From sequence record NC_042098.1: a stretch of DNA of 64,000 nt. The stretch is one strand, 5' to 3'. A program made the translations under genes and the position numbers. Each line of letters opens with the position of its first letter. Positions within the stretch are counted from its first letter, which is position 1. The notes beneath the pieces are model-generated. The model was given only the letters and a program-made list of their open reading frames with translations. It did not search any database and had not been told where the DNA came from. Below, in pieces: positions 5,419-63,535 of the stretch.

Positions 5419-5446
5419 GGAGAGCTTCGGCTCTCCTTTATGCCGG
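5419..5446 (+). terminator. Hairpin + TTTATGCCGG element
   Basis: GGAGAGC-TTCG-GCTCTCC followed by TTTATGCCGG, directly after a stop codon. Confidence 0.8.
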
Positions 5447-5681
5447 CCAGGTTTTCCACCCATTTCCTCTATCGGACAACAGATATAGATAGCGTCTGAT
5501 CAACGTCATTGATCACACCTTATTCTACAACCCCAACGTAACCTGTCGACATTCATAAGGGAATGCCACGCCGTTGTTTATACCCGTCCTTATAAAAGAA
5601 GCGACCAAGCAAAAGACCAATAATCCGCAAGCCTTCTTTAAACTAAACCTGTTCTCTTTTCTTATTAATCTGGAGTGTTGT

Positions 5682-6014
5682 ATGGATTTCTCATTTCTAC
5701 TTGATCAAAACCCGTTGAGCTATTACAAAAACGAGTTACCGGCCTTAGTCCGTGAACTTAATGGCTCGATGGAAGATGATGCCCGTGTTTCTTGTGAAGA
5801 CGCACTGAATGCGCTGGTGCATCTCTTTGCAACACCGGGTGAGCTCATCAGCCTTACTATTCAGCGCCACTGCAGCATTGCGGAGCAGAAGCTTCGCTAT
5901 ACGGCAAAGTTCATCAATGACACGGTGGCCACGGTCGAAGGACCTGAACCAATGGATCTGCGCTATGTGCTAGGGACTGCAGTATTTAACGCCATCACCA
6001 TTCCTATCAAATAA
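5682..6014 (+). CDS. Hypothetical protein (start revised to MDFSFLL)
   Basis: GGAG RBS in TTAATCTGGAGTG upstream of ATG 5682; ends at a bidirectional hairpin. Confidence 0.7.
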   Translation: MDFSFLLDQNPLSYYKNELPALVRELNGSMEDDARVSCEDALNALVHLFATPGELISLTIQRHCSIAEQKLRYTAKFINDTVATVEGPEPMDLRYVLGTAVFNAITIPIK

Positions 6015-6016
6015 AT

Positions 6017-6056
6017 CGGCATAAGAGGAGAGGCAAATGCCTCTCCTCTGTTATGC
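6017..6056. terminator. Bidirectional hairpin element between convergent genes
   Basis: CGGCATAA-GAGGAGAGGC-AAAT-GCCTCTCCTC-TGTTATGC. Confidence 0.85.
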
Positions 6057-6075
6057 TACTTCTTTTTTTTTTGGT

Positions 6076-11340: not shown

Positions 11341-11371
11341 CGGCATAACGAGGGGTCATCACTGACCCCTC
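11341..11371 (-). terminator. Hairpin + TTATGCCG element in antisense orientation
   Basis: CGGCATAAC-GAGGGGTCA-TCAC-TGACCCCTC; tail reads correctly only on the minus strand. Confidence 0.65.
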
Positions 11372-11418
11372 AAAAGTAATCCTATGTTTACACCACCTCT
11401 ACGCCTAAGGAGAACCAC

Positions 11419-16096: not shown

Positions 16097-16150
16097 CAGC
16101 ATAAAGACAGAGAGCTTCCTTGCGGAGGCCCTCTGTCTTGTTTATGCCGG
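16097..16150. terminator. Bidirectional hairpin element between convergent genes
   Basis: CAGCATAA...AAGACAGAG stem...CTCTGTCTT-GTTTATGCCGG. Confidence 0.8.
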
Positions 16151-20499: not shown

Positions 20500-20522
20500 A
20501 GTGGGTGATCCCCTCACCCACT
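20500..20522 (+). terminator. Intergenic hairpin
   Basis: AGTGGGTGA-TCCCC-TCACCCACT followed by TCCCTATGACC (degenerate tail). Confidence 0.5.
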
Positions 20523-20547
20523 TCCCTATGACCCAGGAGAGGTTTCG

Positions 20548-24046: not shown

Positions 24047-24075
24047 GGGGGAGGTGACTCCCCCTTTCTTTATTG
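24047..24075 (+). terminator. Intrinsic terminator-like hairpin
   Basis: GGGGGAG-GTGA-CTCCCCC-TTTCTTTATT. Confidence 0.7.
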
Positions 24076-24087
24076 AAAGGAGTTGCC

Positions 24088-27538: not shown

Positions 27539-27577
27539 CAGCATAAGGAGAGGGCGTTTGCCCTCTCCTCTATGCCG
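27539..27577. terminator. Bidirectional hairpin element between convergent genes
   Basis: CAGCATA-AGGAGAGGGC-GTTT-GCCCTCTCCT-CTATGCCG. Confidence 0.85.
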
Positions 27578-35236: not shown

Positions 35237-35268
35237 GGGAGGGGCGCAGGTCTCTCCCTTTTATGCCG
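35237..35268 (+). terminator. Hairpin + TTTTATGCCG element
   Basis: GGGAGGGGC-GCAG-GTCTCTCCC-TTTTATGCCG. Confidence 0.8.
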
Positions 35269-40387: not shown

Positions 40388-40397
40388 CTTACTTCTG

Positions 40398-40427
40398 GGG
40401 TGAGTGAAAACTCACCCTTTATGCCGG
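40398..40427 (+). terminator. Hairpin + TTTATGCCGG element
   Basis: GGGTGAGT-GAAA-ACTCACCC-TTTATGCCGG. Confidence 0.85.
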
Positions 40428-46037: not shown

Positions 46038-46064
46038 AAGAGGACTTCGGTCCTCTTTTATGCC
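46038..46064 (+). terminator. Hairpin + TTATGCC element
   Basis: AAGAGGAC-TTCG-GTCCTCTT-TTATGCC. Confidence 0.85.
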
Positions 46065-46110
46065 CGGTTTAATTGTATATAGACACAGTACACATCAACC
46101 GAGGGCCATC

Positions 46111-47049: not shown

Positions 47050-47055
47050 GAACCG

Positions 47056-47084
47056 GAGAGGCGCATAGCCTCTCTCTTATGCCG
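47056..47084 (+). terminator. Hairpin + TTATGCCG element
   Basis: GAGAGGC-GCATA-GCCTCTC-TCTTATGCCG. Confidence 0.8.
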
Positions 47085-49193: not shown

Positions 49194-49218
49194 GTTCCAT
49201 TAACCCAAAGAGGTAATT

Positions 49219-49512
49219 ATGTCGTTCACATTGTCAAAGAAACTCGTTCCTGTTCTGCTCACCGCGAAAGACGGCCGTAAGTACGCCGTTGTTAATGGCG
49301 GTAACCGCGCCAAGCTGACCCTCGGCTTTGATGACGGGATCAGTCAGGAGGTTGCTGTGCCTTCTGAGCAGATTCCTGAAGAAGCGCGCATCAACGGCAC
49401 CAAACTGTATTTCGATGCAGAAGGTGCGGTGACGGGCTGGGATGCAGCACCGGGTGGAAAGACGAAGTCAAGCACGACTGCCGGATCAATGACCATGCGT
49501 CGTCCTGGCTAA
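49219..49512 (+). CDS. Hypothetical protein
   Basis: 97 aa, GAGG RBS. Confidence 0.7.
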   Translation: MSFTLSKKLVPVLLTAKDGRKYAVVNGGNRAKLTLGFDDGISQEVAVPSEQIPEEARINGTKLYFDAEGAVTGWDAAPGGKTKSSTTAGSMTMRRPG

Positions 49513-49520
49513 ACCATCAG

Positions 49521-49546
49521 GGGGAGGGAAACCTCCCCTTATGCCG
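49521..49546 (+). terminator. Hairpin + TTATGCCG element
   Basis: GGGGAGG-GAAA-CCTCCCC-TTATGCCG. Confidence 0.85.
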
Positions 49547-49558
49547 TATGGAGGGGTT

Positions 49559-50089
49559 ATGAGTTTATTGATCTACACTGACGGGCTGTTAATCGGTGAT
49601 CGTCGGGGAACACGTAATGCAGAGCATGAGCGATTCATCCGTGACATGAAGAAGACCCATGTTTCGAAATGCAAACGCTTAGCGTTAGGGGTGGTAGGGG
49701 AAGAGATTCATCCAACAGATCTGCCAAAGGTGATGACCTTCTTTATTAACTCGCTGACAGATCACTATCACCGTGAACATGATGTGGGCTATGCCCACAG
49801 TTATAGCGAAGAAGAGTCATTGGTAGCTGGCCTTGAGAATCGTCGTTTTATCCTGATGACAGCTGACCGGGCTTTTATCATTAACTTCGGTTCTTTGACT
49901 GAGATCACTCACGAGCCCTGGTATTGCTCAGGTAACGGAATGGCGATGGCCGATGTCTTTCTGACTGCAGGGATGTCGCCGGGGAAAGTGATTGAAGCGG
50001 TAGCCAAACTCAACCTGGAAGTGGGGCATTCATTTACCCGTGTCGAACAGTCTCGCTTAAAACCCTTGATTAAGAAGGTGGAAGAATGA
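49559..50089 (+). CDS. Proteasome-beta/HslV-like Ntn-hydrolase fold protein (start revised to MSLLIY)
   Basis: SLLIYTDGLLIGDRR (T1...D17 pattern), MKK (K33), LGVVG, CSGNG (GSG) and helix GMSPGKVIEAV; GGAGG RBS. Confidence 0.55.
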   Translation: MSLLIYTDGLLIGDRRGTRNAEHERFIRDMKKTHVSKCKRLALGVVGEEIHPTDLPKVMTFFINSLTDHYHREHDVGYAHSYSEEESLVAGLENRRFILMTADRAFIINFGSLTEITHEPWYCSGNGMAMADVFLTAGMSPGKVIEAVAKLNLEVGHSFTRVEQSRLKPLIKKVEE

Positions 50090-50604
50090 GTGGCATATTC
50101 GCAGCCCAAGGACGTAACCTGGTGTTTCCTACTCAACTGGAGAAAAGGAGTGGGCTTTACTACACCCCGCCCCCTGAAGCGTGCTGGATGCCTTGGGGGC
50201 GTTACTTCCCACTGTCAGCAACCAGCTTCAATATCCTCGAGCATTTCATGACCGGAGAAGATCTACCCCGGGAGAGTTCATACTCGACGCACGTGCTCGG
50301 CATTCTGGTCACGCCAAACGGACTGATCTACGAATACATCAATACCGTTGAAGGGATTAGGCGGCGGGTTGTTCCTTTGGGTAAAGGTGCAGTGTATTGT
50401 CGCTCCGATGATCCATTGCTGGAAGAAGCTATGACAGCAGCGATGGTAGTCCATGACCAGCTGGTTGATGCCATTACGCTGGTGAGTAAGTCCCGCAAAC
50501 TGATGACCCATCAGTACAAATATACAACACTGGACAAAGTATATGCGGAAATAAAGGAACGTAAACTTGTCCTGCAGCCGCCCACGAGGAATAATCTAAT
50601 TTAA
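50086..50604 (+). CDS. Hypothetical protein, possible diverged partner of 49559
   Basis: 172 aa, translationally coupled (ATGA overlap). Confidence 0.7.
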   Translation: MSGIFAAQGRNLVFPTQLEKRSGLYYTPPPEACWMPWGRYFPLSATSFNILEHFMTGEDLPRESSYSTHVLGILVTPNGLIYEYINTVEGIRRRVVPLGKGAVYCRSDDPLLEEAMTAAMVVHDQLVDAITLVSKSRKLMTHQYKYTTLDKVYAEIKERKLVLQPPTRNNLI

Positions 50605-50629
50605 CCCCTGTTTATATAGAAAGGAAAAT

Positions 50630-51076
50630 ATGAACAACTTTATCAACGATGCTTTAGATATCATTGAACTTAACGAAAGTAGTGCACGTACTGAACTCTG
50701 CCGCAAGCAGGAAGCTTCGTTACCGGCCTATATTCTCAAACTGGCGACCCGCCTGGCCAAGAAGATTGCCTATGCAGTTCGCTTAATGGAGAGACGCGAT
50801 GAAGGGTATGTTCGTCTTGGTACTTATAGCGATCGCTGGTTACTCTGTTTTGGTGACCGCATCAGCCGTTATGGCATGCATACGTCGGGTAAGCATGCGC
50901 TCTATCTTACCTTGGATTGGGCTACTTTTATCCGTGACCATAAGTTATTTGACGTGGCAAATCACCTACTTCAATTGGCTCTGGGCAAGTTGCTTCCTGG
51001 GCATTGTGTGTTACTGGGCGGTGAAACACCCAAACACGAATTCGAGTTCGTGATCTGCAAACAAACAATAAAATAA
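50630..51076 (+). CDS. Hypothetical protein
   Basis: 148 aa, AAGGA RBS. Confidence 0.7.
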   Translation: MNNFINDALDIIELNESSARTELCRKQEASLPAYILKLATRLAKKIAYAVRLMERRDEGYVRLGTYSDRWLLCFGDRISRYGMHTSGKHALYLTLDWATFIRDHKLFDVANHLLQLALGKLLPGHCVLLGGETPKHEFEFVICKQTIK

Positions 51077-51087
51077 GAGAGGGCGCC

Positions 51088-51507
51088 ATGCCACAGCGTG
51101 GTACAACACCGAGCTTTGCAGAATTCACACAGCAAGAACTGGCAGAGAAGGTAATCCCGATACTGCCAGATTACTGTAACCGTCTTTGTGGGGTCATGAT
51201 CAGCACATGCTTTGCGCATCGCGTGGGGCTTACTGACAAATCTGTACTGCGTTTTGCTGAGTATCACTTCAACCCCACGCCCGACCTAGCGCGACAAACA
51301 GACTGGTCGGTGGAAGTGCGAAGTGAGCAGTGTGTGGTTTATGAACTCAACATCCCCAAGTTTGTCCATGAGGCTGGATTGGTAAAGCAGTTTTTAGATA
51401 TCCTCTCCAGCCATCTTGAACTTTATTTCACTGACAGTAAGGTGCTCCTCGGTCATGTACTCCCGCCGTGCTTCCTTACTATCCGCATTGAGAAAACAAC
51501 ACCATGA
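51088..51507 (+). CDS. Hypothetical protein
   Basis: 139 aa, GAGG RBS. Confidence 0.7.
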   Translation: MPQRGTTPSFAEFTQQELAEKVIPILPDYCNRLCGVMISTCFAHRVGLTDKSVLRFAEYHFNPTPDLARQTDWSVEVRSEQCVVYELNIPKFVHEAGLVKQFLDILSSHLELYFTDSKVLLGHVLPPCFLTIRIEKTTP

Positions 51508-52271
51508 ATCTTTATCTCGTCTCTGACAGTCGTTATACCCCGCCAGGTGATTTCTACAACAACTGGTTAGTCCACGCTAATAGTCGTGACAATGCCGCGA
51601 TGTTGTGTAATTCACGTTGTCTGGTTGATACCTTTGAGATCGGTAGCCTGAACTACAACAACGGCGAACTGATCATGATGCACAAGACCGTCCAGCACAC
51701 GGATGAACCGCGCCTGAAGCAGAAGGTTGGTGATGCACTGTATTATCCTTTAACGGTATCACCTGACAGCAGTGCCTTTGACCGTATCATTGGTGAGATC
51801 GTGAACAAAGCCGCCTCTCCGTTACCGGAAGGTGTCTCTGTCGATCGCCTTCTCATCAATGCTGACAGTCCTGAAGCGCTGTTCTTTATCTCGCGCCATG
51901 ACTTTGGTAGTTCGCGTTGTTACTACAAAATCCCCAGTGAACTCGACAGCCAGATCTCTAAACTGCTGGACTTCAATAAAGGCGAGCGTATTCCCCGTAC
52001 GTCCCACGAACCGGTCGTGCTCTCCTGGCGTAGTCGACTGTCCCTCATGATCGCGCGTCAGCATGATGATGCGTACAACCATGAGAAGCTGGAGATCTAC
52101 CGTAAAATGGCATTTGATCTGGTAGCTGCTGCGACTGACCACGAGAACGCTGCACTCGCGATACTGGACCCGGACCAACCCGAATTCAAAGTCTGGATGC
52201 CCGGGATTGATGAAGAGAAGATCCATCAAGCGCTGGATGCGTTTGGTGCACCACGTCAGTTAGGGGAATAG
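51504..52271 (+). CDS. Hypothetical protein
   Basis: 255 aa, overlaps the upstream stop. Confidence 0.75.
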   Translation: MNLYLVSDSRYTPPGDFYNNWLVHANSRDNAAMLCNSRCLVDTFEIGSLNYNNGELIMMHKTVQHTDEPRLKQKVGDALYYPLTVSPDSSAFDRIIGEIVNKAASPLPEGVSVDRLLINADSPEALFFISRHDFGSSRCYYKIPSELDSQISKLLDFNKGERIPRTSHEPVVLSWRSRLSLMIARQHDDAYNHEKLEIYRKMAFDLVAAATDHENAALAILDPDQPEFKVWMPGIDEEKIHQALDAFGAPRQLGE

Positions 52272-52288
52272 CCTATTAGGAGCTGTTT

Positions 52289-52879
52289 ATGGAGAGGCTA
52301 ACATTAGCTTGGCTAAGAGCTAATCAAGGAAGGAAATCTCTGGAAGATCGTTTGTTTCAATTCGGTCACGTTTATAGTGAGAGAGATTCCTGTTTCACCT
52401 GGCGTGGGATGGTGGATAATTACGGCTACGGAAAGATAAAGGTTAAAAGTAGATTGGTGGGTGCACACAAACTGTCTTATCTGCTATTCAAAGGGGATAT
52501 TCCAGAAGGTATGGTAGTTAGACACACGTGCGATAACCCAGTCTGTATTAACCCCTCTCATTTAATCGCGGGTACGGTAAAGCAAAACGTTCATGATGCA
52601 ATAGCAAAAGGCCGTGCTTCTTTTCAGAATGCTATCAATTCATCGGTATGTAAGTTTCTGCCGGCCAACGCTATTATTATGGTAGATAGAAAGATAGGCC
52701 CACTACTATGTTATGCAACAACCCGGCGATTAGCCCTTGCTGATAATTCTAAAGTTTACTGGGGTCGTCCGTGTAAGTCACACGGCATGCCTTGGAGAAG
52801 AACCAGTAATGGCGAATGTGTCTATTGCAGGCACGAATACCGAGCAGGTGTGAAGTATACACCTAATGGAAAGAGGTGA
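52289..52879 (+). CDS. Free-standing HNH homing endonuclease
   Basis: CFTW.G...GYG, AHKLSY, VRHTCDNPVCINPSHL..GTVKQN; C-terminal CxxH...CxxC; visibly more AT-rich than neighbours. Confidence 0.9.
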   Translation: MERLTLAWLRANQGRKSLEDRLFQFGHVYSERDSCFTWRGMVDNYGYGKIKVKSRLVGAHKLSYLLFKGDIPEGMVVRHTCDNPVCINPSHLIAGTVKQNVHDAIAKGRASFQNAINSSVCKFLPANAIIMVDRKIGPLLCYATTRRLALADNSKVYWGRPCKSHGMPWRRTSNGECVYCRHEYRAGVKYTPNGKR

Positions 52880-52894
52880 TCCCTTTATCTTCCG

Positions 52895-52970
52895 CGGGTG
52901 AGGGTTAGAACCCGGCTGTGGCCGCATAGCCAAAGTCGGTTAATCAAAGTCGACGGATTTGGATTACCCG
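52895..52970 (+). ncRNA. Candidate structured RNA (closing stem plus three hairpins)
   Basis: CGGGTGA/TTACCCG encloses GGGT-TAGA-ACCC, GGCTGTG-GCCG-CATAGCC and GTCGGTT-AATCAA-AGTCGAC; folded by hand. Confidence 0.35.
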
Positions 52971-53032
52971 GCGTGACTTGTCATTGTTTCACTTTGTTCC
53001 ACTACACAAACAGCTCAACTCTCTCATAATTC

Positions 53033-53063
53033 AAGGGGTGGGGTAACTCACCCCTTTATGCCG
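53033..53063 (+). terminator. Hairpin + TTATGCCG element
   Basis: AAGGGGTGG-GGTAAC-TCACCCCTT-TATGCCG. Confidence 0.8.
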
Positions 53064-53078
53064 CAAGGATCTATTATC

Positions 53079-53411
53079 ATGCAGGAATTCTTCAAAAGCT
53101 ACGGCACGTACTTCTTTGATGTACTCATGTTTATCATGGTGTTCGCCTGGTGTTTCTGTGGCAGTGGCGGTACACGTCATGACAAAAACAAATGGTTGCG
53201 TTACGGCGCACCTGTTGCACTTGGTCTTTTTGTTGTGCTGGTCGTCCACGGGTTTGGTGCATTTGATCGTTATCTGGAAAGGAATAAGTGCGCTGACTTA
53301 CCAATAGGTGTCGGCGTAATGATTGAAGACCGCTGCTACAAGCGCGTTGATGGACCCGTGTACATATCCGCCGACAGTACCGTGTACAAGGAGAGCAATG
53401 TACATGACTGA
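53079..53411 (+). CDS. Small membrane protein (2 TM); start revised to MQEFF
   Basis: Two hydrophobic segments; AAGGA RBS. Confidence 0.65.
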   Translation: MQEFFKSYGTYFFDVLMFIMVFAWCFCGSGGTRHDKNKWLRYGAPVALGLFVVLVVHGFGAFDRYLERNKCADLPIGVGVMIEDRCYKRVDGPVYISADSTVYKESNVHD

Positions 53412-53607
53412 TTTGTGGTTGTACATTGCAATCTTTCTGCTCTGTTATATCTGGGCATTCTTCGGTCTTCCACCTACCGGTAATAAAAGAAAGCTTTATC
53501 TGTATCCGGGAATCGTTGCAGTAGCGTTCTGTTTAGGTGTAATGGCGATTAAGAACTGCAGTGATTCAACCACACGATATCAACCGCTGTACAACGTGCA
53601 TCAATAA
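53404..53607 (+). CDS. Small membrane protein (2 TM); start revised to MTDLW
   Basis: AAGGAG RBS; two hydrophobic segments. Confidence 0.6.
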   Translation: MTDLWLYIAIFLLCYIWAFFGLPPTGNKRKLYLYPGIVAVAFCLGVMAIKNCSDSTTRYQPLYNVHQ

Positions 53608-53610
53608 CGG

Positions 53611-53658
53611 GAGGAGGCTTTGGCCTCCTCTTATGCCGACTATTCTTTTTTGGTTATT
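53611..53658 (+). terminator. Hairpin + TTATGCCG + TTCTTTTTTGGTTATT element
   Basis: GAGGAGGC-TTTG-GCCTCCTC-TTATGCCG then a 16-mer also found at 63520. Confidence 0.85.
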
Positions 53659-53708
53659 TCCTACATCTACCCGCAAATCATTTAGCCCATTATACACTGG
53701 AGTTATTC

Positions 53709-54263
53709 ATGGAAAAGATTACGAGTGATACGATCCTTGCTAAGTTACATGAGGTGGCAGAAACAAACAAAGAAAACCAACATCGGAAACTCCGCTCAAT
53801 AAGCCAAACCATGGCGTACAACATTGAAGCGATAGTCGAGTTGATTGCGTTATCGGGTGAGATGCACCTTGATCTGCTTGATCGACGCAAGGTTGATGAG
53901 ATCATAGAGCCGCATTACAAAGGCAATCAACGGGCTTATAGTCGACTGAGTCATACCGCCTCTATTCACACGGGGATGGAGTACCTTGCCGGCAACGCGC
54001 ACATCTACACCAACAACGAGGGTAAAGAAGCGGTACGAATCGTCTGTACCTTTAAGTTTAAACGCGACTTCCTGCAACCTAGCTTATTACCTAAGGTACT
54101 TCACTACTGTCTGCAGGAGCTTCAACCGCAGTTTGATGATGGCGGCAGTAGCGTCTTCTTCCACACACCGGGTGAGTTAGATAATCCCCGTCTTAAAGCC
54201 ATTCCGGGCTGGCACGTCGACGCTAACGTCCGTGATAACTCCATTGTCATTAGTTTACGTTAA
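53709..54263 (+). CDS. Hypothetical protein
   Basis: 184 aa, GGAG RBS. Confidence 0.75.
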   Translation: MEKITSDTILAKLHEVAETNKENQHRKLRSISQTMAYNIEAIVELIALSGEMHLDLLDRRKVDEIIEPHYKGNQRAYSRLSHTASIHTGMEYLAGNAHIYTNNEGKEAVRIVCTFKFKRDFLQPSLLPKVLHYCLQELQPQFDDGGSSVFFHTPGELDNPRLKAIPGWHVDANVRDNSIVISLR

Positions 54264-54273
54264 GGAACCAAAC

Positions 54274-54984
54274 ATGATCGTTGTTGTTGTTGATACTGAA
54301 TCGACTGCTTTGGATGAGCTCGCGGGTATTCTGAGTTTGTCCGCTATTCGCACTAACGTGGCTGACATGAGTTGCATCAAGCACCTGATCGGCGTGCACC
54401 AAGCCGGCAAGACGCATGACGACATCTTCCATGCCGTATTGAACCTTAATGAACAATACGTGATGGGTCGTACCTTCTTGCAAAGCACCCAGGATTGGTG
54501 GATGAAGAAAACCACCCCGGCGGCGAAGGCTTCAGTAACCGGACCAACACAGTCTGCAAAAGATGCTTTGACAGCATTTGTGGTTTTCATCGAAAAGGCC
54601 ATTGAGGCGACGATTAACGAACGCGGGGAGAAAGCGAAGGTCCAGCTGTACTACCGTGGCGACTTCGATGCTAAAGCCATTGCGTCCCTGGCAAAAGCGG
54701 TGGGTGTTGAACTCCCGTATATTTTCAATCAGAACAAAGAGATCCGCACATATATCGATGCCAAGCTGGACACGGATATCGGTTATATCCCGTGGCTCGG
54801 TTACCCAGAAGGACTGGGGCGTCATAGCTCACTCGATGATGTTCTAATCGATGGCTTCGAGATGGCGGTGGCCTATCGCATCAATCACCTCGAAAAGTTC
54901 GATAAAAAGTCGGTGCCGGGCGAGATCGCCAAACTGAAAGAAACGTACCCTGTTCCGGAGAAAACCCATGCAAAATCTAAATGA
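54274..54984 (+). CDS. DEDD-family (DnaQ-like) 3'-5' exonuclease
   Basis: VVVDTES (ExoI), RGDFD (ExoII), HSSLDD (ExoIII); T.DWW typical of the exonuclease VIII/DUF5051-like group. Confidence 0.8.
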   Translation: MIVVVVDTESTALDELAGILSLSAIRTNVADMSCIKHLIGVHQAGKTHDDIFHAVLNLNEQYVMGRTFLQSTQDWWMKKTTPAAKASVTGPTQSAKDALTAFVVFIEKAIEATINERGEKAKVQLYYRGDFDAKAIASLAKAVGVELPYIFNQNKEIRTYIDAKLDTDIGYIPWLGYPEGLGRHSSLDDVLIDGFEMAVAYRINHLEKFDKKSVPGEIAKLKETYPVPEKTHAKSK

Positions 54985-55690
54985 CCGTATCTTTGCCAAT
55001 TATGATGGTTACATTGAAGCTATTGATGCGCATTTTAAACCTACCTATCAACTGCAGCTGGCTGAGCAAGTCATCCCGGGCGAGCAGATGGATAAGCTTG
55101 TAACCTGGATGGACCACAACGCCCATGTCAAAGGTGCGACGGTCTACCTGATGGAGTTGGTGCCTGATCTCGATAAACCGCATCCTGCACAATCAGAGAT
55201 GCGTGTGTTTATTGCACTCGGTATGTTTAATCGTGAAGTCAACCCTGATTTGCCTTACTGGTGTCATGTACATCGCCATTACCCGGTTAACCTCGCTGTC
55301 GACTTGATTGTTACTGACCTGCAAGGCGTTCCTGTAACCCATGCCGTTCTGACTGCGTTTAAGTCATTTGATCGAGCACGCACCTACAGGGATAATCTCG
55401 GCGGCAAAGGTGGGCATCAACCGCATCACGAAATCCATACTGGCATTATTGACCAAAGTGGTAAGGTGATCTTCGAAGCCTACGGGAATATCAACTGGCA
55501 TACCAAGAATGCCATTCGCCTGCTGGCTGAACGACAGATTTTGCAGGAAGATACCGAGTTGTCAGCGGTGTGGTTACTGGCGGGTTTAAAAGCGGGTGTT
55601 AACTGGAAAGTCGAAGACCATGTTGACATCATGAAAGCAATCGATACTTTCCGTCCGAGGAATACCCATGATTTTAACGGCTATGTTTAA
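54968..55690 (+). CDS. Hypothetical protein
   Basis: 240 aa, overlapping neighbours. Confidence 0.75.
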   Translation: MQNLNDRIFANYDGYIEAIDAHFKPTYQLQLAEQVIPGEQMDKLVTWMDHNAHVKGATVYLMELVPDLDKPHPAQSEMRVFIALGMFNREVNPDLPYWCHVHRHYPVNLAVDLIVTDLQGVPVTHAVLTAFKSFDRARTYRDNLGGKGGHQPHHEIHTGIIDQSGKVIFEAYGNINWHTKNAIRLLAERQILQEDTELSAVWLLAGLKAGVNWKVEDHVDIMKAIDTFRPRNTHDFNGYV

Positions 55691-56432
55691 GAAGTGCTTT
55701 GGTGCGTCGTCTGTCTATAAAGAAGATGACGGCAGTACACGCATTACCGCTGACCAGTATGAACTTACGCTGGGTCGATCCTACCATCCTAAGCTCAAGC
55801 GTAAGGTGGGTCGGGGATTTGGCTTCTATGTCGAAAATGGCGAGAAGCTCGAGTTCGTCTTGCGGGGTTACTGGTTTGTGTTGATCGCCTGGAGCAAGAA
55901 GCGCAAATCACTCAATTGGGACGAAGCGGAAAATGCACCGACCTACGGCTTCAATGTTGTCGACTCTGACTTAGCGATCTATCTCGGCAATGAATCCGCT
56001 AAGTCAGACAAACACATCAGCATGCGTAGTCGTAGCAAATACATCCCCCTGCCCTGGGCCTGGACCTTCCATAAGCGTGAAGTGTTAACCACCCGTGATA
56101 CCTGGGTTGATGTCAAAGAAGGTGCGTTATCTCAGGAGTGGTCGTTCCCCGCCACATACGTCACCAAGCACAATGAAGTGCAAGAGATGATGATCGAAGC
56201 GAAGATGGAGCGCATGACCTGGCGCCTGGCATGGCTCCCTTGGTTCGCACCGGTTACCAAGAAAGACCGCTCGGCGAGTTACAAGTACCACGGGAACGGT
56301 GGTAACGGGGTTGGTCACGATGCCAGTGGGTGGAAAGGCGGGGTCATCGGTGGCGGGGTCATCATGCGAGACAATGAACACAACCCGAAAGAAACATTCG
56401 ACCGTTTAATTAAAGAGCAGCATTACGGCTAA
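55668..56432 (+). CDS. Hypothetical Trp-rich protein
   Basis: 254 aa; start could be 55683. Confidence 0.75.
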   Translation: MILTAMFKKCFGASSVYKEDDGSTRITADQYELTLGRSYHPKLKRKVGRGFGFYVENGEKLEFVLRGYWFVLIAWSKKRKSLNWDEAENAPTYGFNVVDSDLAIYLGNESAKSDKHISMRSRSKYIPLPWAWTFHKREVLTTRDTWVDVKEGALSQEWSFPATYVTKHNEVQEMMIEAKMERMTWRLAWLPWFAPVTKKDRSASYKYHGNGGNGVGHDASGWKGGVIGGGVIMRDNEHNPKETFDRLIKEQHYG

Positions 56433-56444
56433 GAAGGAAAACAC

Positions 56445-57596
56445 ATGCGTCAGTATTTGGATGGGATTCGTTACATCTTTGAGAACGGGTCACAACGAGG
56501 GGATCGCACCGGGGTAGGTACGTTGTCGGTGTTCTCGATGAAGCAGACTTACGATCTGCGTCTGGGATTCCCACTGGTCACCAGTAAGAAAGTGCGTATC
56601 GATTTTATTATCGAAGAGCTCATCTCCTTCCTGTCGGGTAATCCCGATATGCCGGGTGTGGGTATCTGGGATGATTGGCGTGTTAAAGACGAAGTCTCTC
56701 GTGAAGTCCCGTTAGAGAACCACGAGCGTTTAAAACTCTGGGTTGAGAAGTCGGACCTGAAGTATAACGTTGCTTACCTTCAACTCAATGCGATGGGTTC
56801 TGTCGAAGCGGGTCATCGTTTCCTGGATGAGCAAGGGATTCCACGTAACAGAAAAGAAGTACTGGTAGCAGAAGGTGCACTCAATGCACCCTATGGGCCA
56901 GCGTGGCGTGCGTGGAAAGGTCGTCAGGGCGAAGTGCATGATCAGATCGGTTATCTGCTCAAGCTGCTTAAAAACAATCCTACGAGCCGTCGTATGCTAT
57001 TGTCTGCTTGGGACCCGGCGAACATGCCGGATGAGTCTATCAGCCCGCAGGATAACATCATTGATGGCAAGCCACCTCTGACTCCGTGTCATTGGGCGTT
57101 TGAGCTGTACACTGACGAAATCCTGGCAGAGGAACGCCTTGATTGGGTCGAAGCTAACGCACCTAGCCTCTGGGAAGACTACAATGATCGTTCAGGACGT
57201 GGTCAATGGTTAGGCGACACAGACAGTAAGCGCCTTCATGAATTCCTGGACGAAGCCGGCGTACCGAAGTATTACCTGGATATGAAGTATCACCAACGTT
57301 CCTGTGACTATATGGTTGGCGTGCCGTATAACATCGCCAGCTATGCGGTGTTGCAGCACATGTTCGCCGCCACCTGTAACATGATCCCGCGGATACTGGA
57401 AGCGGATATGACTAACATCCATATCTACAACTTCCACAAAACCAATGCGGTCATGCAGGCCAGTCGCAGCCCACGCGCACTACCCACTCTGAAGGTACTC
57501 GCCGCTCACGATAAGTTGGAAGACTATACGTTGGAAGACTTTGAACTCGAAGGTTATGATCCGCATCCTTTTATTAAATATGAAAGAGCGGTCTGA
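56445..57596 (+). CDS. thyA: Thymidylate synthase with two large insertions
   Basis: DRTGVGT, FPLVTSKK, YGPAWR, SRRMLLSAW, PCH (catalytic Cys), QRSCD and PYNIASY motifs. Confidence 0.95.
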   Translation: MRQYLDGIRYIFENGSQRGDRTGVGTLSVFSMKQTYDLRLGFPLVTSKKVRIDFIIEELISFLSGNPDMPGVGIWDDWRVKDEVSREVPLENHERLKLWVEKSDLKYNVAYLQLNAMGSVEAGHRFLDEQGIPRNRKEVLVAEGALNAPYGPAWRAWKGRQGEVHDQIGYLLKLLKNNPTSRRMLLSAWDPANMPDESISPQDNIIDGKPPLTPCHWAFELYTDEILAEERLDWVEANAPSLWEDYNDRSGRGQWLGDTDSKRLHEFLDEAGVPKYYLDMKYHQRSCDYMVGVPYNIASYAVLQHMFAATCNMIPRILEADMTNIHIYNFHKTNAVMQASRSPRALPTLKVLAAHDKLEDYTLEDFELEGYDPHPFIKYERAV

Positions 57597-57628
57597 TCCA
57601 TTGGTGCGTTGAAGGGAGCACAACGGTA

Positions 57629-57994
57629 ATGAAGAGAGAGTCCAGTTACACCCTGGTCTTTGGGGAAGGTAGTACTGAAGAAGATGTCAATACCCTGCGT
57701 GAGATGGTGTCACACATGCGGGGGTTGACCGGGTTGTCGCAGCTGGGGGCGTTTGAGGTGTTCGTTACCCATTATGAATTGCAACGTAAAGACGCAGGGC
57801 TGATCATCAGTGATCTTCCAGTGAATGCACAGTCGTTGTTTGATGTCAGTGATCGACAGAACTGGCTGACACCGCTGTTCACTTCCCGGGGGTTAGTGGC
57901 GTGTGACTTGTTGTTGCTGTTGAAGCAAGGCAAATGGGCCGGAGAACACCTCAAGGTGACCTTTCGGGTAAAGGGTATCAGGGCGAAAGCATAA
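57629..57994 (+). CDS. Hypothetical protein
   Basis: 121 aa, GGGAG RBS. Confidence 0.7.
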   Translation: MKRESSYTLVFGEGSTEEDVNTLREMVSHMRGLTGLSQLGAFEVFVTHYELQRKDAGLIISDLPVNAQSLFDVSDRQNWLTPLFTSRGLVACDLLLLLKQGKWAGEHLKVTFRVKGIRAKA

Positions 57995-58000
57995 CGCATA

Positions 58001-58028
58001 CGGAGGGGTCATTCCCTCCGCTATGCCG
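58001..58028 (+). terminator. Hairpin + CTATGCCG element
   Basis: CGGAGGG-GTCATT-CCCTCCG-CTATGCCG. Confidence 0.8.
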
Positions 58029-58063
58029 ATTAAGTTTTTAACAAAGTTTACTGCAGATCTTTT

Positions 58064-58077
58064 CAGACCTATATCAC
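58064..58077 (+). promoter_or_regulatory. Putative early promoter core CAGACCTATATCAC
   Basis: One mismatch to the phiKZ TATATTAC core; shares CAGACCTA with 40024. Confidence 0.55.
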
Positions 58078-58126
58078 GTCGGTGAATAACCTTTCACTAA
58101 TTAACCAATCCGTAAGGAGTTTTATC

Positions 58127-59503
58127 ATGGCTGCATTAAAATCTAAAGTTGAACTGTTTCACTGGTATCAGGAACTGAAAACTGAATTTAAAACCGGCAA
58201 GATTACCGTGTTCGAATTTGAGCGGCAAGTGCTCAGCGAAATTCTTTCCCTGACCGATACTGGTAAAACACCATCTACTGCCAAAATCAGTCTGGTAGTG
58301 GACATCCTTAATTCTGTGGTTTTTGATCATGTGTTTACCGCAGACGGTATCATTGACCTGGACAACATGCTCGCTCGTGAACACGTACGCAACATTTCGG
58401 AATTGACGGCAGCACGCAATAACTTTATTACCATACAAGCCCAGGCCCGTCTGAACAAAGAAAAGGAACAGACTGCGAAACCAGCAGAGCAGAAGGCGTT
58501 TGCCAAGTTTCCAACGAAAGAAGAGCTCGAATATTGGGTTAATGCCAGAAAGCTATTCCGTTATGGTAACCCCAATACGCTCGGCACTGAAGCATACCAG
58601 GAGGTTGTCAAATACTGGCATCTGGTCGATAAATATCTGGGTACATTAAAACTGGAACTGGATCACACCGACCCTAACTACGTCGATAACATCCTGTTGA
58701 TTGACTACTTTGTATCGTTGGTCGCCAAGCAAGAGGTTCCTGAGGAAGAACGCAGGCATCTGAAAGACACACTTAGCAGTCTATATGCGTGCCCCATTAA
58801 AACCCCACACATCGATGCATTTGTCGAACGTGACCAACACCCCCTTCCAGTTAAGCCAAAACAACCACCCATCGCGCAACAAGCCATCGACCGCGCTATT
58901 GCCTGGCGTGAAGAGGAAACCAAAACAAACCATCAGCAAAAAGACATATTACGAGAATTCGCCGATCAATACTGTCCGGTAATGGTGGCCAAGCAACATG
59001 CCACTCAGCAGTTGTTTGATTTCGTTGCTCGTGCGGTGAAACGTGTCTTGACCGCCATTGCTCAGCCAAACAACCCGGAAGACGCCGAGATGCTGGCAAA
59101 AGGTCATGCCATCAACATTCTCAATGTTAAGCATGGTGTAATTGGTGTCAGTACCACGATTACCAGAAACGGTCTGGTCAAGTTACGCATCTTCGCTGAA
59201 CGTGAACTATGTAACGAGGACTACGGTATTCCGACTCTGTCGTATAATCAAGTCCGTCAATCACCTCATGCAACGTTCAGCATACCAATGCCGGCACTGA
59301 TAGATGGGTTCATTAACATGTGGGATATCCCTAATCAGGCCCCTCGCCATATGCATAATAGCGTAGGCGGTATGTTGGGTAATCCCTATCCGTTACAGCA
59401 GCTTGATGGTTTGATGTCAGCTATTGCAAGAGAAACAGCCGAGTACGGCGTTACGCCTACTTATGGCATGATCGAAGACAGCATGATTGTTGTGCTGCAT
59501 TAA
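58127..59503 (+). CDS. Hypothetical protein sharing an N-terminal module with 59567 (start revised to MAALKS)
   Basis: AAGGAG RBS; about 458 aa. Confidence 0.8.
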   Translation: MAALKSKVELFHWYQELKTEFKTGKITVFEFERQVLSEILSLTDTGKTPSTAKISLVVDILNSVVFDHVFTADGIIDLDNMLAREHVRNISELTAARNNFITIQAQARLNKEKEQTAKPAEQKAFAKFPTKEELEYWVNARKLFRYGNPNTLGTEAYQEVVKYWHLVDKYLGTLKLELDHTDPNYVDNILLIDYFVSLVAKQEVPEEERRHLKDTLSSLYACPIKTPHIDAFVERDQHPLPVKPKQPPIAQQAIDRAIAWREEETKTNHQQKDILREFADQYCPVMVAKQHATQQLFDFVARAVKRVLTAIAQPNNPEDAEMLAKGHAINILNVKHGVIGVSTTITRNGLVKLRIFAERELCNEDYGIPTLSYNQVRQSPHATFSIPMPALIDGFINMWDIPNQAPRHMHNSVGGMLGNPYPLQQLDGLMSAIARETAEYGVTPTYGMIEDSMIVVLH

Positions 59504-59510
59504 TTCACAC

Positions 59511-59540
59511 GGGGAGGTTTCCCTCCCCCTTTTATTTTTT
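59511..59540 (+). terminator. Intrinsic terminator
   Basis: GGGGAGG-TTTC-CCTCCCC followed by a long T tract. Confidence 0.85.
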
Positions 59541-59566
59541 AATTAACCTACTGTGAGAATTTAACC

Positions 59567-60268
59567 ATGAACAAAGAAACTTATACTACCTGGTACAATG
59601 GATTAAAAGAAAGATTGGCGACTGGGCACATTAATCAGGAACACTACGAGACACTTATTGTTGACAATCTAAGTTCATTGATTACTCATTTCTTCAATAG
59701 TCGATACGACGATGGTCATATGTCTCTGGAGGAGCATTTTGCGTTAGTTAATCATTATTTCGAACTGGTTGCTGATGCAGAAATATCAGAACGCAGTGCC
59801 ATGCTCATGGTACGTTCTGTAGCTAGCAGTATTCAAAAGCTACCAGCGGCTAAAGCCTTCGCAGAGAAACATAACACTCCGGCGCCGTCAATTAAAGAAA
59901 TTCTTGGTAGTCGACCTGGTTTACTGCGTAAGCATGCTGCCAGCACGACCGAGAAGATGATAGGGTGTCCGGTGATCACCCAGGCCAACGAACCTGAGAA
60001 CGAAGTAACCATTGACTTACCCTGGAAATTGGCATTGCACGTTTACAAAGGGTTCCTGGTAAAGGCGCTGATGTCAAAGCACGGATATAAATACAGTGAT
60101 GCGTATAACTACATTACTGATCATCAGAACAAATACGACGAACTCTTGGCAGAAGTCCTCAACAACATTATTGCTAATGAGGAATCGCATCTGGTGTCGG
60201 TAGGTGGCGGCATCACTGCAGCGGGTACTGGTCTGGTGGTAAGCGGGATTATTAAGCCGGAGGAGTGA
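59567..60268 (+). CDS. Protein carrying a degenerate RNA polymerase beta-prime switch-2/dock-like segment
   Basis: aa 108-202 align by eye with the RpoC G.R...G..VIT...LP..AL..FK.F...L...G pattern; no NADFDGD. Confidence 0.6.
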   Translation: MNKETYTTWYNGLKERLATGHINQEHYETLIVDNLSSLITHFFNSRYDDGHMSLEEHFALVNHYFELVADAEISERSAMLMVRSVASSIQKLPAAKAFAEKHNTPAPSIKEILGSRPGLLRKHAASTTEKMIGCPVITQANEPENEVTIDLPWKLALHVYKGFLVKALMSKHGYKYSDAYNYITDHQNKYDELLAEVLNNIIANEESHLVSVGGGITAAGTGLVVSGIIKPEE

Positions 60269-60828
60269 TGAAAGGAGAGATAGAGACACGCTTCAGAAGA
60301 CACTACGGCAACCACATTAAACGGGGTAGTGATATCGCAGTGCCTTTATACCACATTAGTCTACAGAATGACTTGGAGGGGCTATGGCGACCTAAAGCCC
60401 CTGACTCGCCATTTGATATTCCGAAGAAACCCAACATCATTACTGAAATGCCGCTCCCGCGTATCTGTGTAGCACCATCTATCGAACAGTGCTTCTGGGC
60501 AATCTATCCCAATATCTCTAAGCTCTTTGAAGAGGAAGAATACGCAGCGGTTTGTTTTGCGGTTTATCAACCGATTCTGCATGCCGGTATTGCTGTCGTG
60601 GATACCAGTACGTTAACGCAATGCCGACTAGTGCACGATGCACATATTACCGGCGAGCATTGGTTACTTAGTGATACCACCATGTGTGTGATCGACTTTA
60701 TTCAGGTTAATAACACCTCACACGGCGAGTTCGTAAAGTTCCATCCGTTTAATACCCCGGTTGGTAACGAATGGGAGCTCGCCCCTAAAAATGTTGTTTA
60801 TCATTCACTTAAATTAACGGAGTTGTAA
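60265..60828 (+). CDS. Hypothetical protein, possible ADP-ribosyltransferase-like fold
   Basis: LYHIS and PRICVAPSIEQC motifs. Confidence 0.6.
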   Translation: MMKGEIETRFRRHYGNHIKRGSDIAVPLYHISLQNDLEGLWRPKAPDSPFDIPKKPNIITEMPLPRICVAPSIEQCFWAIYPNISKLFEEEEYAAVCFAVYQPILHAGIAVVDTSTLTQCRLVHDAHITGEHWLLSDTTMCVIDFIQVNNTSHGEFVKFHPFNTPVGNEWELAPKNVVYHSLKLTEL

Positions 60829-60832
60829 ATCC

Positions 60833-61477
60833 ATGGTAACTGCTAGAAAAGCTAATAAGACCTTAGGTGAGCACGCAGTGGCTCATGAGGCAGTAACACG
60901 CTTAGGTAGCAACAAGAAAGTCAAACCAGTTAAACCGCTTTGGACACTGGAGAACATCGAGGACAATCTGGTTGGTCAAGGCATCCTTGCCTACTTGAAA
61001 CGCCACACGTCGTTATCGATCCGTGATATCAACACCGCGGCTAACCGCCTGACGAAGATTGCTGATTCAGATATAAAGGAAGGGAAAGCGCGTGATTACG
61101 TGGCACGAGTTATTGGGTACAACAATTACGACGCTCTCAACGTCACCGTTCGTGCAGCGGTACCTGTGCGCAATCATGTACAACGTCGTAAAGCAAATCA
61201 GCCGGTCACAGAGTTGTTGATAGAAGACGAAGAACTGCCGCCGGTAACACGTACTGAAATCAACCCCTTGGTGATGTTAGCCCTACAGCGTGAGATCTCT
61301 AAACGCGGCTTTCGTCTACTGGGTAAGAACTACCGGGCTTTCGTTAACAAGGATAACCCCGAGCACACCTTTACGTTGATGCAGGCGTATAACTACCTTG
61401 CCAAACAACTGGGTTATCCGGATTATCACTCTATGCCCCGTCAATACCCAATCATTAACTTGCGCTACGTCGATTAA
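60833..61477 (+). CDS. Basic protein with two internal A...GY..Y helical repeats
   Basis: ARDYVARVIGYNNYDAL and AYNYLAKQLGYPDYHSM. Confidence 0.7.
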   Translation: MVTARKANKTLGEHAVAHEAVTRLGSNKKVKPVKPLWTLENIEDNLVGQGILAYLKRHTSLSIRDINTAANRLTKIADSDIKEGKARDYVARVIGYNNYDALNVTVRAAVPVRNHVQRRKANQPVTELLIEDEELPPVTRTEINPLVMLALQREISKRGFRLLGKNYRAFVNKDNPEHTFTLMQAYNYLAKQLGYPDYHSMPRQYPIINLRYVD

Positions 61478-61499
61478 CCTATTGTAAGGAATAAAGAAC

Positions 61500-62249
61500 A
61501 TGACAACGACTTTCCCGAAAGAGATGAATGCTGCTTTCCATCCTGATAACGAACAAACCACCCAGCTGTGCAAAACGATCCAGCAGATCAGCGGGGTGGA
61601 GATCAAACGTGTACATGTGGTGATGGCGATCCACCATTACAAACAAAACGATGCGGCACATCAGCCTGACCACATGCTGGCGGTCTTAGCAGAAGCAGCC
61701 CACATCATCCAGTCGTTTCCTGACCTGGAGAAATGGCGCACCCAGATCATGTTAGGGTGTCTGTTCCATGACACCCACTGTCACATCGATCGGGATATGC
61801 ACCACCTGCTAGGCGCCGAACATGCCCAAGAGGCATTACTGGAGTATGCGTGTGGTTATGGGATGTCACGTGCGGATGTCTACCTGATCAGTCAGGCCGT
61901 GCTGGAGCATCGGGCTTCCTGGAAGTACCCGCGTATTAACCCTGTATCCAACGCTGTGGCGTCTGCAGATCGTGGCTACCCTGATCTAAAGAAATACATC
62001 CGTCGTGCTGTACAGTACCGTTACAAGCGCACGGCAGTCATCAACATGAACACCATCATCGATGAGTCGATCGAGCACATGGTAGAGAAGTTCGGGGATG
62101 GCGGTTATGCCTGGGAGAGCTACCCGACATATGCGGCAGTGATGCACGGTGATGCGATCCAACAAGTGAAGCAACAACTGCGCAGTAAAGAAGGAAAGGC
62201 GCAACTCAAAGAGTACGCTGAACTCCACTTTGATGAGTGGGTAGAGTAA
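61500..62249 (+). CDS. HD-domain phosphohydrolase
   Basis: H..DH, LFHD, HH..GA, AVLEH and SAD motifs in canonical order. Confidence 0.85.
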   Translation: MTTTFPKEMNAAFHPDNEQTTQLCKTIQQISGVEIKRVHVVMAIHHYKQNDAAHQPDHMLAVLAEAAHIIQSFPDLEKWRTQIMLGCLFHDTHCHIDRDMHHLLGAEHAQEALLEYACGYGMSRADVYLISQAVLEHRASWKYPRINPVSNAVASADRGYPDLKKYIRRAVQYRYKRTAVINMNTIIDESIEHMVEKFGDGGYAWESYPTYAAVMHGDAIQQVKQQLRSKEGKAQLKEYAELHFDEWVE

Positions 62250-62257
62250 GCTACGTG

Positions 62258-62286
62258 GCCGGAGGATTACCTCCGGCTGTTATGCC
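62258..62286 (+). terminator. Hairpin + GTTATGCC element
   Basis: GCCGGAGG-ATTA-CCTCCGGC-TGTTATGCC, then a T-rich tract. Confidence 0.8.
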
Positions 62287-62409
62287 TGTTCTTTCTTCTT
62301 TGTAATTCTCAACACATTCGGTCTTTGTTATACAAAGGCTATAATCTTTGTCCCGAGCTAAGGGTAACGTGAACAGTTATGCTGGCTTACTTTTTAAAGG
62401 TATCTTTTC

Positions 62410-62940
62410 ATGGATGGTTTATTTAATCTCTCCTCATGGCAATCGCTTTTACTTGTGGTAGTCGTACTCCTACTGTGGGCGTATTACCAACGACTTCAAC
62501 ACCTGCGTCGTAAGTATCATCGCCGTAATGAACGCATGATGGCGCAGAGCGTGGTCATGACATCCCGGCTGTTACTGAGTACCTTCTCGGAGATTGTGGA
62601 ACGCGCTAAAGAGGAGGACATCTACCAGCGTGATCCTAACTCCCCGATTGCGGCAGACCGGGCCAGTGCGATGGCCTGCTCCTCCATCTTCAGTGGGTTG
62701 TATAACCTGGTTGTGGTGCCCGTCACCACCCTTGATCCGGTGTTCAACGATTTATTGATTACCGGTACTGAGCGGGAAGATGTTGAGGAAGGGGTCTTTG
62801 TGTCGTTTTATTTGGGTGAACAGCGTAATGATGTGGTTAGGCATTTTATACCCGACCGGTCGTTACAGGCCTTTATCACCCAAACGCGTGCCTTCAGTGC
62901 TTACCTGCGACAGGCTGCGAATACAAAACCACCACAATGA
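62410..62940 (+). CDS. Membrane-anchored hypothetical protein
   Basis: N-terminal TM LLLVVVVLLLWAYY. Confidence 0.75.
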   Translation: MDGLFNLSSWQSLLLVVVVLLLWAYYQRLQHLRRKYHRRNERMMAQSVVMTSRLLLSTFSEIVERAKEEDIYQRDPNSPIAADRASAMACSSIFSGLYNLVVVPVTTLDPVFNDLLITGTEREDVEEGVFVSFYLGEQRNDVVRHFIPDRSLQAFITQTRAFSAYLRQAANTKPPQ

Positions 62941-62948
62941 GGTGACAC

Positions 62949-63479
62949 ATGACCAATTATGGTTTTCTGCTGAACACAGTACTTCTGGCTTTTCTTATTT
63001 GGTTTGGTTACCGACTGCACACGTTGGTAAACAACAGCGAGAAAGCCACCCTCGCCGCTGATCATAACGCCAAGCTGCGCTTCCTGACCTATGCAGCCCG
63101 GCAGATAATGAGTGACTTGTATACGTCGCTCAATCTTCCGACGCTCACCGGGTGTGCGAAGATGTATCTACGTGATGACGGCAAGCTTGATAATATTGAA
63201 GTCATTATGCGACTCTTCATGAAAACCCATAATGAGATTATTACCAAGCTCTCCGAGGGATTGGTGTCGGATCATTTGAAGATCACCGATGTTAAAGTTA
63301 CCCATGATCTGGTGACCAACGAAGTGCTCATCACACTCTTGTATCCGAATAAAGTCACTGACATCCTGGTTTTCCATCATAACCACCTGGCGCAGGCGAT
63401 CTACCAGCTGGATCGATTGCAGCATCGGCTCTCAACGTTCCACAAAGCGGTGCCGAACCGCGACCTGTACCAACTCTAA
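62949..63479 (+). CDS. Membrane-anchored hypothetical protein
   Basis: N-terminal TM; GAGGTG RBS. Confidence 0.75.
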   Translation: MTNYGFLLNTVLLAFLIWFGYRLHTLVNNSEKATLAADHNAKLRFLTYAARQIMSDLYTSLNLPTLTGCAKMYLRDDGKLDNIEVIMRLFMKTHNEIITKLSEGLVSDHLKITDVKVTHDLVTNEVLITLLYPNKVTDILVFHHNHLAQAIYQLDRLQHRLSTFHKAVPNRDLYQL

Positions 63480-63482
63480 ACC

Positions 63483-63535
63483 AAGGGAGGGCTTCGGCTC
63501 TCCCTTATGCCACCCGTTCTTCTTTTTTGGTTATT
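63483..63535 (+). terminator. Hairpin + TTATGCC + TTCTTTTTTGGTTATT element
   Basis: AAGGGAGGGC-TTCG-GCTCTCCCTT-ATGCC and a downstream 16-mer identical to 53643. Confidence 0.85.

Follow-up and report, generated by a model that had tools for sequence, protein, structure and literature searches.

Hairpins followed by TATGC as probable phiKZ-family terminators in the Erwinia phage Desertfox

The stretch of DNA analysed here (the window; 64,000 nucleotides of record NC_042098.1) corresponds to bases 1-64000 of Erwinia phage vB_EamM_Desertfox (MG655268.1), as a 7-kb piece was 100% identical and the coordinates are equal. Desertfox belongs to the genus Agricanvirus and is a nucleus-forming jumbo phage of the phiKZ type with a genome of 272 kb; the 7-kb piece matches eight further Agricanvirus genomes at 88-96% and AH06 at 76%. 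Between its genes, G+C-rich hairpins recur that are followed by a tail reading TATGCCG or a close variant. This hairpin with its tail is a real element that marks the ends of transcription units in Desertfox, and it is a new example of the terminator signal known from phages phiKZ and 201phi2-1. In our view, the elements are probably (about 85%) factor-independent terminators of the intrinsic type that belong to the phiKZ family. This is supported by their computed position, orientation, geometry, conservation and bias towards one RNA strand, and by an architecture shared with the mapped terminators of the relatives.

Hairpins, tails and gene ends

Genome-wide counts were made on the complete Desertfox record. 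We searched the window for TATGC with a stem of 7 or more pairs, 4 or more of them G:C, no more than 5 nt before it. There are 17 such sites, compared with 0.56 ± 0.79 (maximum, 5) in 200 shuffles that preserve the dinucleotides. TATGCC taken by itself shows hardly any enrichment in the window (38 copies where 28 are expected), and the signal therefore lies in its coupling to hairpins. A genome-wide motif scan, which the initial annotation of this DNA had proposed as a check, bears this out. TTATGCCG is present in 40 copies, with 6.9 expected under a Markov-3 model, and 33 of the 40 lie directly 3' of a hairpin. TATGC comes after a hairpin in 75 of 394 cases (19%), whereas most control pentamers do so in 2 to 4.5%; pentamers that overlap the tail run above the other controls (TTTAT, 8.6%; CTATG, 5.5%; TTATT, 4.7%). 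When TATGCC follows a hairpin, it continues with G in 40 of 50 copies.

A count that started from the hairpins, and that was not anchored on the motif, gave a similar picture for 67 hairpin sides located no more than 80 nt downstream of a co-oriented gene end. TATG lies within 10 nt in 44 of the sides, TATG-Y-Y-G is present in 31, and (T/C/A)TAT is found within 9 nt in 54. The remaining sides mostly carry close variants (TTATACCG twice, TTATTACCG, and TTTATGAC) or T-rich tails that still contain TTAT. Counted from the last G:C pair, T is dominant only at positions 1 to 5, and C or G is dominant at positions 6 to 9. Most tail sites are missed by a consensus terminator scan because such a scan demands a T-run: requiring five T in eight recovered just one of seven tail sites in the region 44001-64000.

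The position of the element relative to genes is highly specific. Genome-wide, 57 of the 75 hairpin-TATGC sites lie no more than 80 nt past the stop codon of a co-oriented gene. In the Desertfox annotation, 18 blocks of minus-strand genes result in 18 convergent and 18 divergent junctions, and the element is present at 17 of the convergent but at none of the divergent ones (Fisher p = 4e-9). The sole convergent junction without it has no intergenic space. As promoters must lie in divergent regions and are useless in convergent ones, this distribution fits a terminator and is the opposite of what a start site would show. The proposal in the initial annotation of a strand-specific signal at transcript ends is thus supported, in the form of a terminator. 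Tails are present on both strands at 10 of the 17 element-bearing convergent junctions, among them the three in the window for which this had already been noticed (6023 minus and 6052 plus, 16103 minus and 16143 plus, and 27545 minus and 27571 plus). At 120446 (plus) and 271541 (minus), the site represents the antisense side of a two-sided hairpin.

The two strands do not always carry the same kind of tail. On the minus strand, which encodes mostly virion structural genes, the tail is a bare TTATGCCG, and long T-runs after two-tier stems are found on the plus strand only. At six convergent junctions (e.g., 6018-6072), TATGC on the plus strand pairs with the complement of the minus-strand tail, which results in an outer stem followed by 8 to 10 U. 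This two-tier stem with a U-run is a canonical terminator. The terminator of gp5 in the window (6025, plus strand) is of this canonical type because its TATGC sits inside the extended outer stem, after which 10 U follow. The earlier statement that the tail takes the place of a long U-tract therefore holds generally but not for this side, and long U-runs are found at a minority of the Desertfox sites.

The geometry and the strand bias of the hairpins point in the same direction. The stems are 8-16 bp long, and the mean hairpin energy at the 57 sites is -19 kcal/mol, with z-scores of -2.7 to -7.5 in eight examples. The G of TATG lies 5 to 7 nt past the last G:C stem pair in 51 of the 57 sites, which places CC|G at 7 to 9 nt, the usual release window of intrinsic terminators. 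At 30 of the 35 one-sided sites, the hairpin folds more stably in the sense strand than in the complement (mean difference, -3.2 kcal/mol). This is due to G.U pairs, of which these sites contain 37 and which become A.C mismatches on the other strand; at two-sided sites both strands are equivalent in hairpin stability. The sense-strand bias indicates that the structure is selected in the RNA of the gene's strand. At orthologous junctions of phages RAY and AH06, the stem is altered by compensatory or wobble substitutions or is replaced altogether (gp20/21, gp49/50, and gp50/51), whereas the tail is retained. A purine occupies the 5' arm (G:C plus A:U) at stem pairs 3 to 9 in 24 to 28 of 31 distinct sequences, and in an alignment of 32 hairpins, GGAGG-like words that resemble Shine-Dalgarno sequences are frequent in this purine-rich arm. 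An upstream CAUAA that can pair with the tail was considered as a requirement and rejected, as such pairing is enriched yet present at just 6 of the 35 one-sided sites.

Relation to the mapped terminators of phiKZ and 201phi2-1

In phiKZ, ONT-cappable-seq revealed 133 termination regions, of which 61 have TTAT after a shared stem-loop (Putzeys et al. 2024, PMC10914365), and the published terminator motif is BCCYCCCCHWWDGGGRRGGBYTTATKYYGT (PMC10914365). In 201phi2-1, motif A was found at 59 of 132 termination sites and was described as strongly phiKZ-like, and combinations of motifs lengthen the stem (PMC11512511). These mapped motifs mean that the Desertfox element, described in the initial annotation as a non-canonical transcription signal, is not a new kind of signal. 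Its TTATGCCG is accommodated by the TTAT-K-Y-Y-G pattern. All three phages share the G+C-rich stem-loop, TTAT and K-Y-Y-G, the location downstream of genes, the two-sided use between convergent genes and the presence of dozens of copies per genome. All three are nucleus-forming phages with two multisubunit RNA polymerases of their own; in Desertfox, several split beta-like polymerase genes are annotated across the genome, as in the split multisubunit enzymes of the phiKZ family. In their two-tier stems, the convergent junctions of Desertfox are reminiscent of the combined motifs A and B in 201phi2-1. Desertfox differs from phiKZ in that it is an Agricanvirus with an Erwinia host, and its tail is fixed as G-C-C-G instead of K-Y-Y-G-T. 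The paper describing the genus Agricanvirus reported that MEME/FIMO searches gave only motifs of little or no significance, so the motif had not previously been described for this genus.

We scanned about 42 kb around the capsid gene in each of KTN4 (phiKZ species), 201phi2-1, Goslar, Xoo-sp14 and RP12, as well as 22 kb of pEa_SNUABM_48, and the same tails are present in all of these regions; they are weaker in RSL2. A filter for perfect Watson-Crick stems undercounted the motif in Goslar and AH06, which was corrected by allowing G.U pairs and by reading the 3' flanks of genes directly. In the sampled 42 kb of SPN3US the G-Y-Y-G tail was not found, and the tails there are T-rich and still contain TTAT. 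The exact register of the 3' end was compared for the eight 201phi2-1 termination sites with coordinates printed in the text of the paper (PMC11512511). All eight map to a stem-loop followed by TTAT-N-N-Y-G. Seven end on the pyrimidine directly before the final G, 8 nt past the stem, and the eighth ends one base earlier.

Based on these similarities, we propose that the nascent RNA would fold into the G+C-rich hairpin and that the next 7 to 9 nt (UUUAUGCC) would serve as a short, imperfect U-tract. Release would occur at the pyrimidine directly before the conserved G, which would be the first untranscribed base. By homology with 201phi2-1, the Desertfox 3' end is expected at CC|G, with transcripts ending in ...UUUAUGCC, and the stopping enzymes would presumably be the phage polymerases. 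Multisubunit polymerases are prone to pause where the RNA ends in a pyrimidine, the next nucleotide is a G and the downstream duplex is G+C-rich. The G-C-C-G may thus act at the level of the elongation complex, and these pause-favouring features are a possible reason why CC|G is conserved beyond a short U-stretch.

With canonical intrinsic terminators the element has in common the G+C-rich hairpin, the U-rich start of the tail, the two-sided use at convergent genes and, as predicted from 201phi2-1, release 7 to 9 nt past the stem. The host polymerase also responds to related 201phi2-1 elements: eight terminators were active in a host-based terminator-trap reporter without phage polymerases, four of them more so than lambda T0 (PMC11512511). 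The suggestion of a terminator specific for a phage RNA polymerase is therefore supported as far as the terminator is concerned, but its specificity is doubtful. Unlike a canonical terminator, the Desertfox element has a conserved G past the predicted 3' end.

Several points weigh against a phiKZ-type intrinsic terminator. The 3' ends in Desertfox are predicted by homology with the mapped relatives, and ONT-cappable-seq ends are accurate to about 1-2 nt only (PMC11512511). A 3' end at a hairpin could also come from exonucleolytic trimming or processing. Instead of a canonical U-tract of about 7-8 nt, the Desertfox tail has 2-4 U, followed by an invariant A-U-G and two C. The polarity of the stem is reversed, with a GGAGRGG-like 5' arm in Desertfox and CCYCCCC in phiKZ and Goslar; this polarity is a feature of the phiKZ logo and not of the mechanism. 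For one copy, at 11347 on the minus strand, there is no upstream gene in the same orientation. The initial annotation saw the tail as tied to transcript ends, but this orphan (the hairpin at 11350) carries its tail on the minus strand alone, while both neighbouring genes are on the plus strand, so that it does not belong to the end of a co-oriented transcript. Finally, 95% of the cells in the stems of 32 copies are paired, a percentage that is partly circular because these hairpins were picked for folding. The informative part of this set is the diversity of pair types, with 100 cells double-changed relative to the commonest pair, compared with 26 ± 5 in shuffles. Covariation was counted on an ungapped, loop-centred subset of 32 hairpins, and MAFFT gave no common register for the differing hairpin geometries.

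Other readings of the tail

The late promoter word of phiKZ is TATG, with the G as +1, and a 2026 structure shows this word, in the non-template strand at -3 to +1, bound by GP123, the beta-like subunit of the non-virion polymerase of phiKZ. The Desertfox tail has the same letters in the non-template strand, and Desertfox has kept the subunit that binds TATG: F151, H331 and Q466 of the GP123 family are invariant across nine phages, and Desertfox gp2 is also aromatic at positions 185 and 406. The tail differs from the phiKZ late promoter in that it stands after a hairpin at gene ends and is followed by CCG instead of TA(A/G), and, unlike that promoter, the hairpin with TATGC is absent from the promoter-bearing divergent regions. 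The idea that TATG in the tail is read during elongation by a GP123-type pocket in the beta-lobe, so that one word marks both starts and stops, is tentative and, in our view, unlikely. The same holds for its extension, in which the downstream bases would decide the outcome, a TA-rich sequence leading to melting and initiation and CCG after a hairpin leading to pausing and release. The conservation of the pocket residues in gp2 is suggestive at best, and the mapped 201phi2-1 3' ends, which lie 3 nt beyond the register that places TATG at -3 to +1, count against such a role of the pocket. SPN3US, whose sampled region lacks G-Y-Y-G tails, has the most divergent GP123 homologue, a single case seen in an alignment at 22-28% identity. 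If true, reading by the pocket would represent a sequence-specific termination signal of the core enzyme without counterpart in cellular polymerases.

Alternatively, a nuclease or RNA-binding protein may read the hairpin and the tail, with cleavage or trimming making the 3' end, or with the mark licensing exit from the nucleus. In favour of this, the sense RNA strand is under selection, conservation of the tail exceeds the needs of a U-tract, the phage nucleus requires export of mRNA, and a 3' hairpin would shield any transcript from exonucleases. We regard such a processing, stability or export mark as quite improbable because the 201phi2-1 ends lie inside the tail and precede the conserved G, so that this G is not in the RNA, and because a constant distance of 7-9 nt to the stem is the hallmark of termination. 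Moreover, the 201phi2-1 elements lower downstream expression in a reporter without phage proteins. The export mark suggested in the initial annotation finds no support: only one RNA-binding protein, ChmC, is known to associate with the phage nucleus, and it binds close to start codons and yielded no motif; nothing links the tail to any protein.

The initial annotation had also suggested a terminator fused to a late promoter, where transcription stops at the hairpin and the non-virion polymerase restarts at the G of TATG. The promoter word, the conserved residues of its binding subunit and the fact that the next gene downstream is co-oriented at 30 of the 57 sites would agree with this. The location of the elements makes it highly improbable, as starts at the 17 convergent junctions, often on both strands, would yield only antisense RNA, and the divergent junctions have none. 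In addition, the genes downstream of the sites are mostly small and non-structural, the sites are not concentrated before structural genes, and the G+C-rich CCG past the G would hinder melting. The candidate promoters are separate motifs. CCTAYATTAY is present in 19 copies in the genome, all on the plus strand and most 37-214 nt before a gene start (32728 and 40028 in the window), with (G/C/A)TG 4-5 nt further on. This motif probably represents a phage promoter class and resembles the ATTAC core of the phiKZ middle-promoter motif. Four copies lie 23-30 nt past a tail, which argues against a start within the tail itself. TATGTAA is enriched 23-fold in upstream regions and is found before the capsid gene (genome 269105-269121) and at several divergent junctions, with further positions at 99465 (minus), 111629 (minus), 220001 (minus) and 182849 (plus). 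These sites are candidate TATG-type late promoters, distinct from the tail in the bases after the G, and they read TATGTA(A), like the P119L promoters of phiKZ and 201phi2-1 (TATGTAGA). A hairpin promoter of the N4 type, in which a short DNA hairpin upstream of early genes directs initiation, does not fit the location at gene 3' ends and convergent junctions or the stems of 8-16 bp.

Near-identical palindromic modules recur at distant junctions, one set at 27546-27569 of the window and at 119587, 155812 and 253039 of the genome, and a second at 6024-6049 of the window and at 96369, 172451 and 271545 of the genome; some of the 4-nt loops are inverted. This suggests copying or exchange between junctions. 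The modules could also speak for a DNA-level palindromic repeat (REP-like, a signal for recombination or replication, or a small mobile element) that piles up between genes, which is hardly credible given that the tail follows the strand of the gene at 57 of 75 sites, G.U pairs are biased towards the transcribed strand, the element is missing from divergent junctions whose length is similar, the stem sequences are unrelated in most copies, and no target-site duplications or flanking repeats were seen.

Sites in the window and implications

The 15 hairpins with tails described in the initial annotation are all present in the sequence (Table 1), and three more intergenic hairpins in the window (20500, 24047 and 59511) have other tails. 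No Rfam family was found in the window at gathering thresholds, and no tRNAs were found in it.

Table 1. Predicted terminators and related features in the window
Feature	Position	Strand	Remarks
gp2, beta-like subunit of non-virion RNA polymerase	1001..2689	plus	RAY gp2 annotation; 25% identity with KTN4/phiKZ GP123; context, not part of the element
Terminator after gp4	5418..5445	plus	8-bp stem, UUCG loop, tail tTATGCCG; z = -4.6; kept in RAY and AH06
Terminator of gp6 (portal-like structural gene)	6017..6049	minus	11-bp stem and TATGCCG; z = -7.5
Terminator of gp5, same palindrome as that of gp6	6018..6072	plus	Outer stem (CGGCAUAA with UUAUGCU), then CUUC and U10; -28 kcal/mol, z = -6.8
Orphan hairpin and TATGCCG	11341..11372	minus	Between plus-strand gp7 and gp8; plus-strand tail AAAAG
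Terminator of gp14	16097..16139	minus	Long interrupted stem and TATGCUG
Terminator of gp13, same palindrome as that of gp14	16104..16149	plus	Tail gttTATGCCG
Hairpin after gp18	20500..20535	plus	Tail TCCCTATGACC (variant)
Hairpin after gp19	24047..24078	plus	T-rich tail still containing TTAT (variant class)
Terminator of gp21	27539..27569	minus	10-bp stem and TATGCUG
Terminator of gp20, same palindrome as that of gp21	27546..27577	plus	Tail cTATGCCG; z = -7.1; other hairpin but identical tail in RAY and AH06
Terminator after gp29	35237..35268	plus	9-bp stem including 2 G.U pairs, tail tttTATGCCG; sense -15.5, antisense -6.8 kcal/mol
Terminator after gp40	40397..40426	plus	Hairpin and tail
Terminator after gp49	46038..46065	plus	Tail tTATGCCC; in AH06 other stem, tail TTTTATACCC
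Terminator after gp50	47055..47084	plus	Stem replaced and tail kept in AH06
Terminator after gp55	49520..49546	plus	Hairpin and tail
Hairpin and TATGCCG upstream of gp61	53033..53063	plus	
Terminator 3 nt past gp62 stop	53610..53638	plus	T-run downstream
Terminator after gp68	58001..58028	plus	Hairpin and tail
Hairpin after gp69	59511..59540	plus	Tail CTTTTATTTTTT (canonical class; TTAT also present)
Terminator after gp73	62255..62287	plus	Tail TATGCCT
Terminator after gp75	63484..63512	plus	Tail TATGCCA; z = -3.5

The orphan hairpin has lost its minus-strand tail in AH06, where the hairpin and the 45 nt downstream of it are kept. These 45 nt between the hairpin and the start of gp8 (11372-11418) are almost identical in AH06, and the flanking genes are only about 76% identical. 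The segment contains CCTATGTTTAC and may serve a virion gene as a conserved promoter or leader. Past several tails, at a distance of about 8-12 nt, there is a T-run with GGTTA(T/A) (TTCTTTTTTGGTTAT-like), for instance at 53639-53660 and 63513-63535 in the window and at 81148 and 6058 in the genome.

The annotated starts of gp50 (46060), gp56 (49541) and gp61 (53058) are the ATG inside a TATGCC tail. In-frame ATGs with a Shine-Dalgarno-like sequence are found further downstream (49559 after GGAGGGG and 53079 after AAGGA), and the orthologue of gp50 in AH06 starts well downstream of its tail. The three annotated starts are probably artefacts of choosing the longest open reading frame. The element can thus flag probable start-codon mis-annotations where the ATG of a tail was taken as the start of a gene.

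The sites described here provide a first map of transcription-unit ends for phages of the genus Agricanvirus, candidates for the biocontrol of fire blight. The terminator architecture of phiKZ is common to nucleus-forming phages of Pseudomonas, Erwinia, Escherichia, Xanthomonas and Ralstonia hosts. That it spans these hosts whatever the G+C content of the genome points to a constraint from the phage's own transcription machinery.

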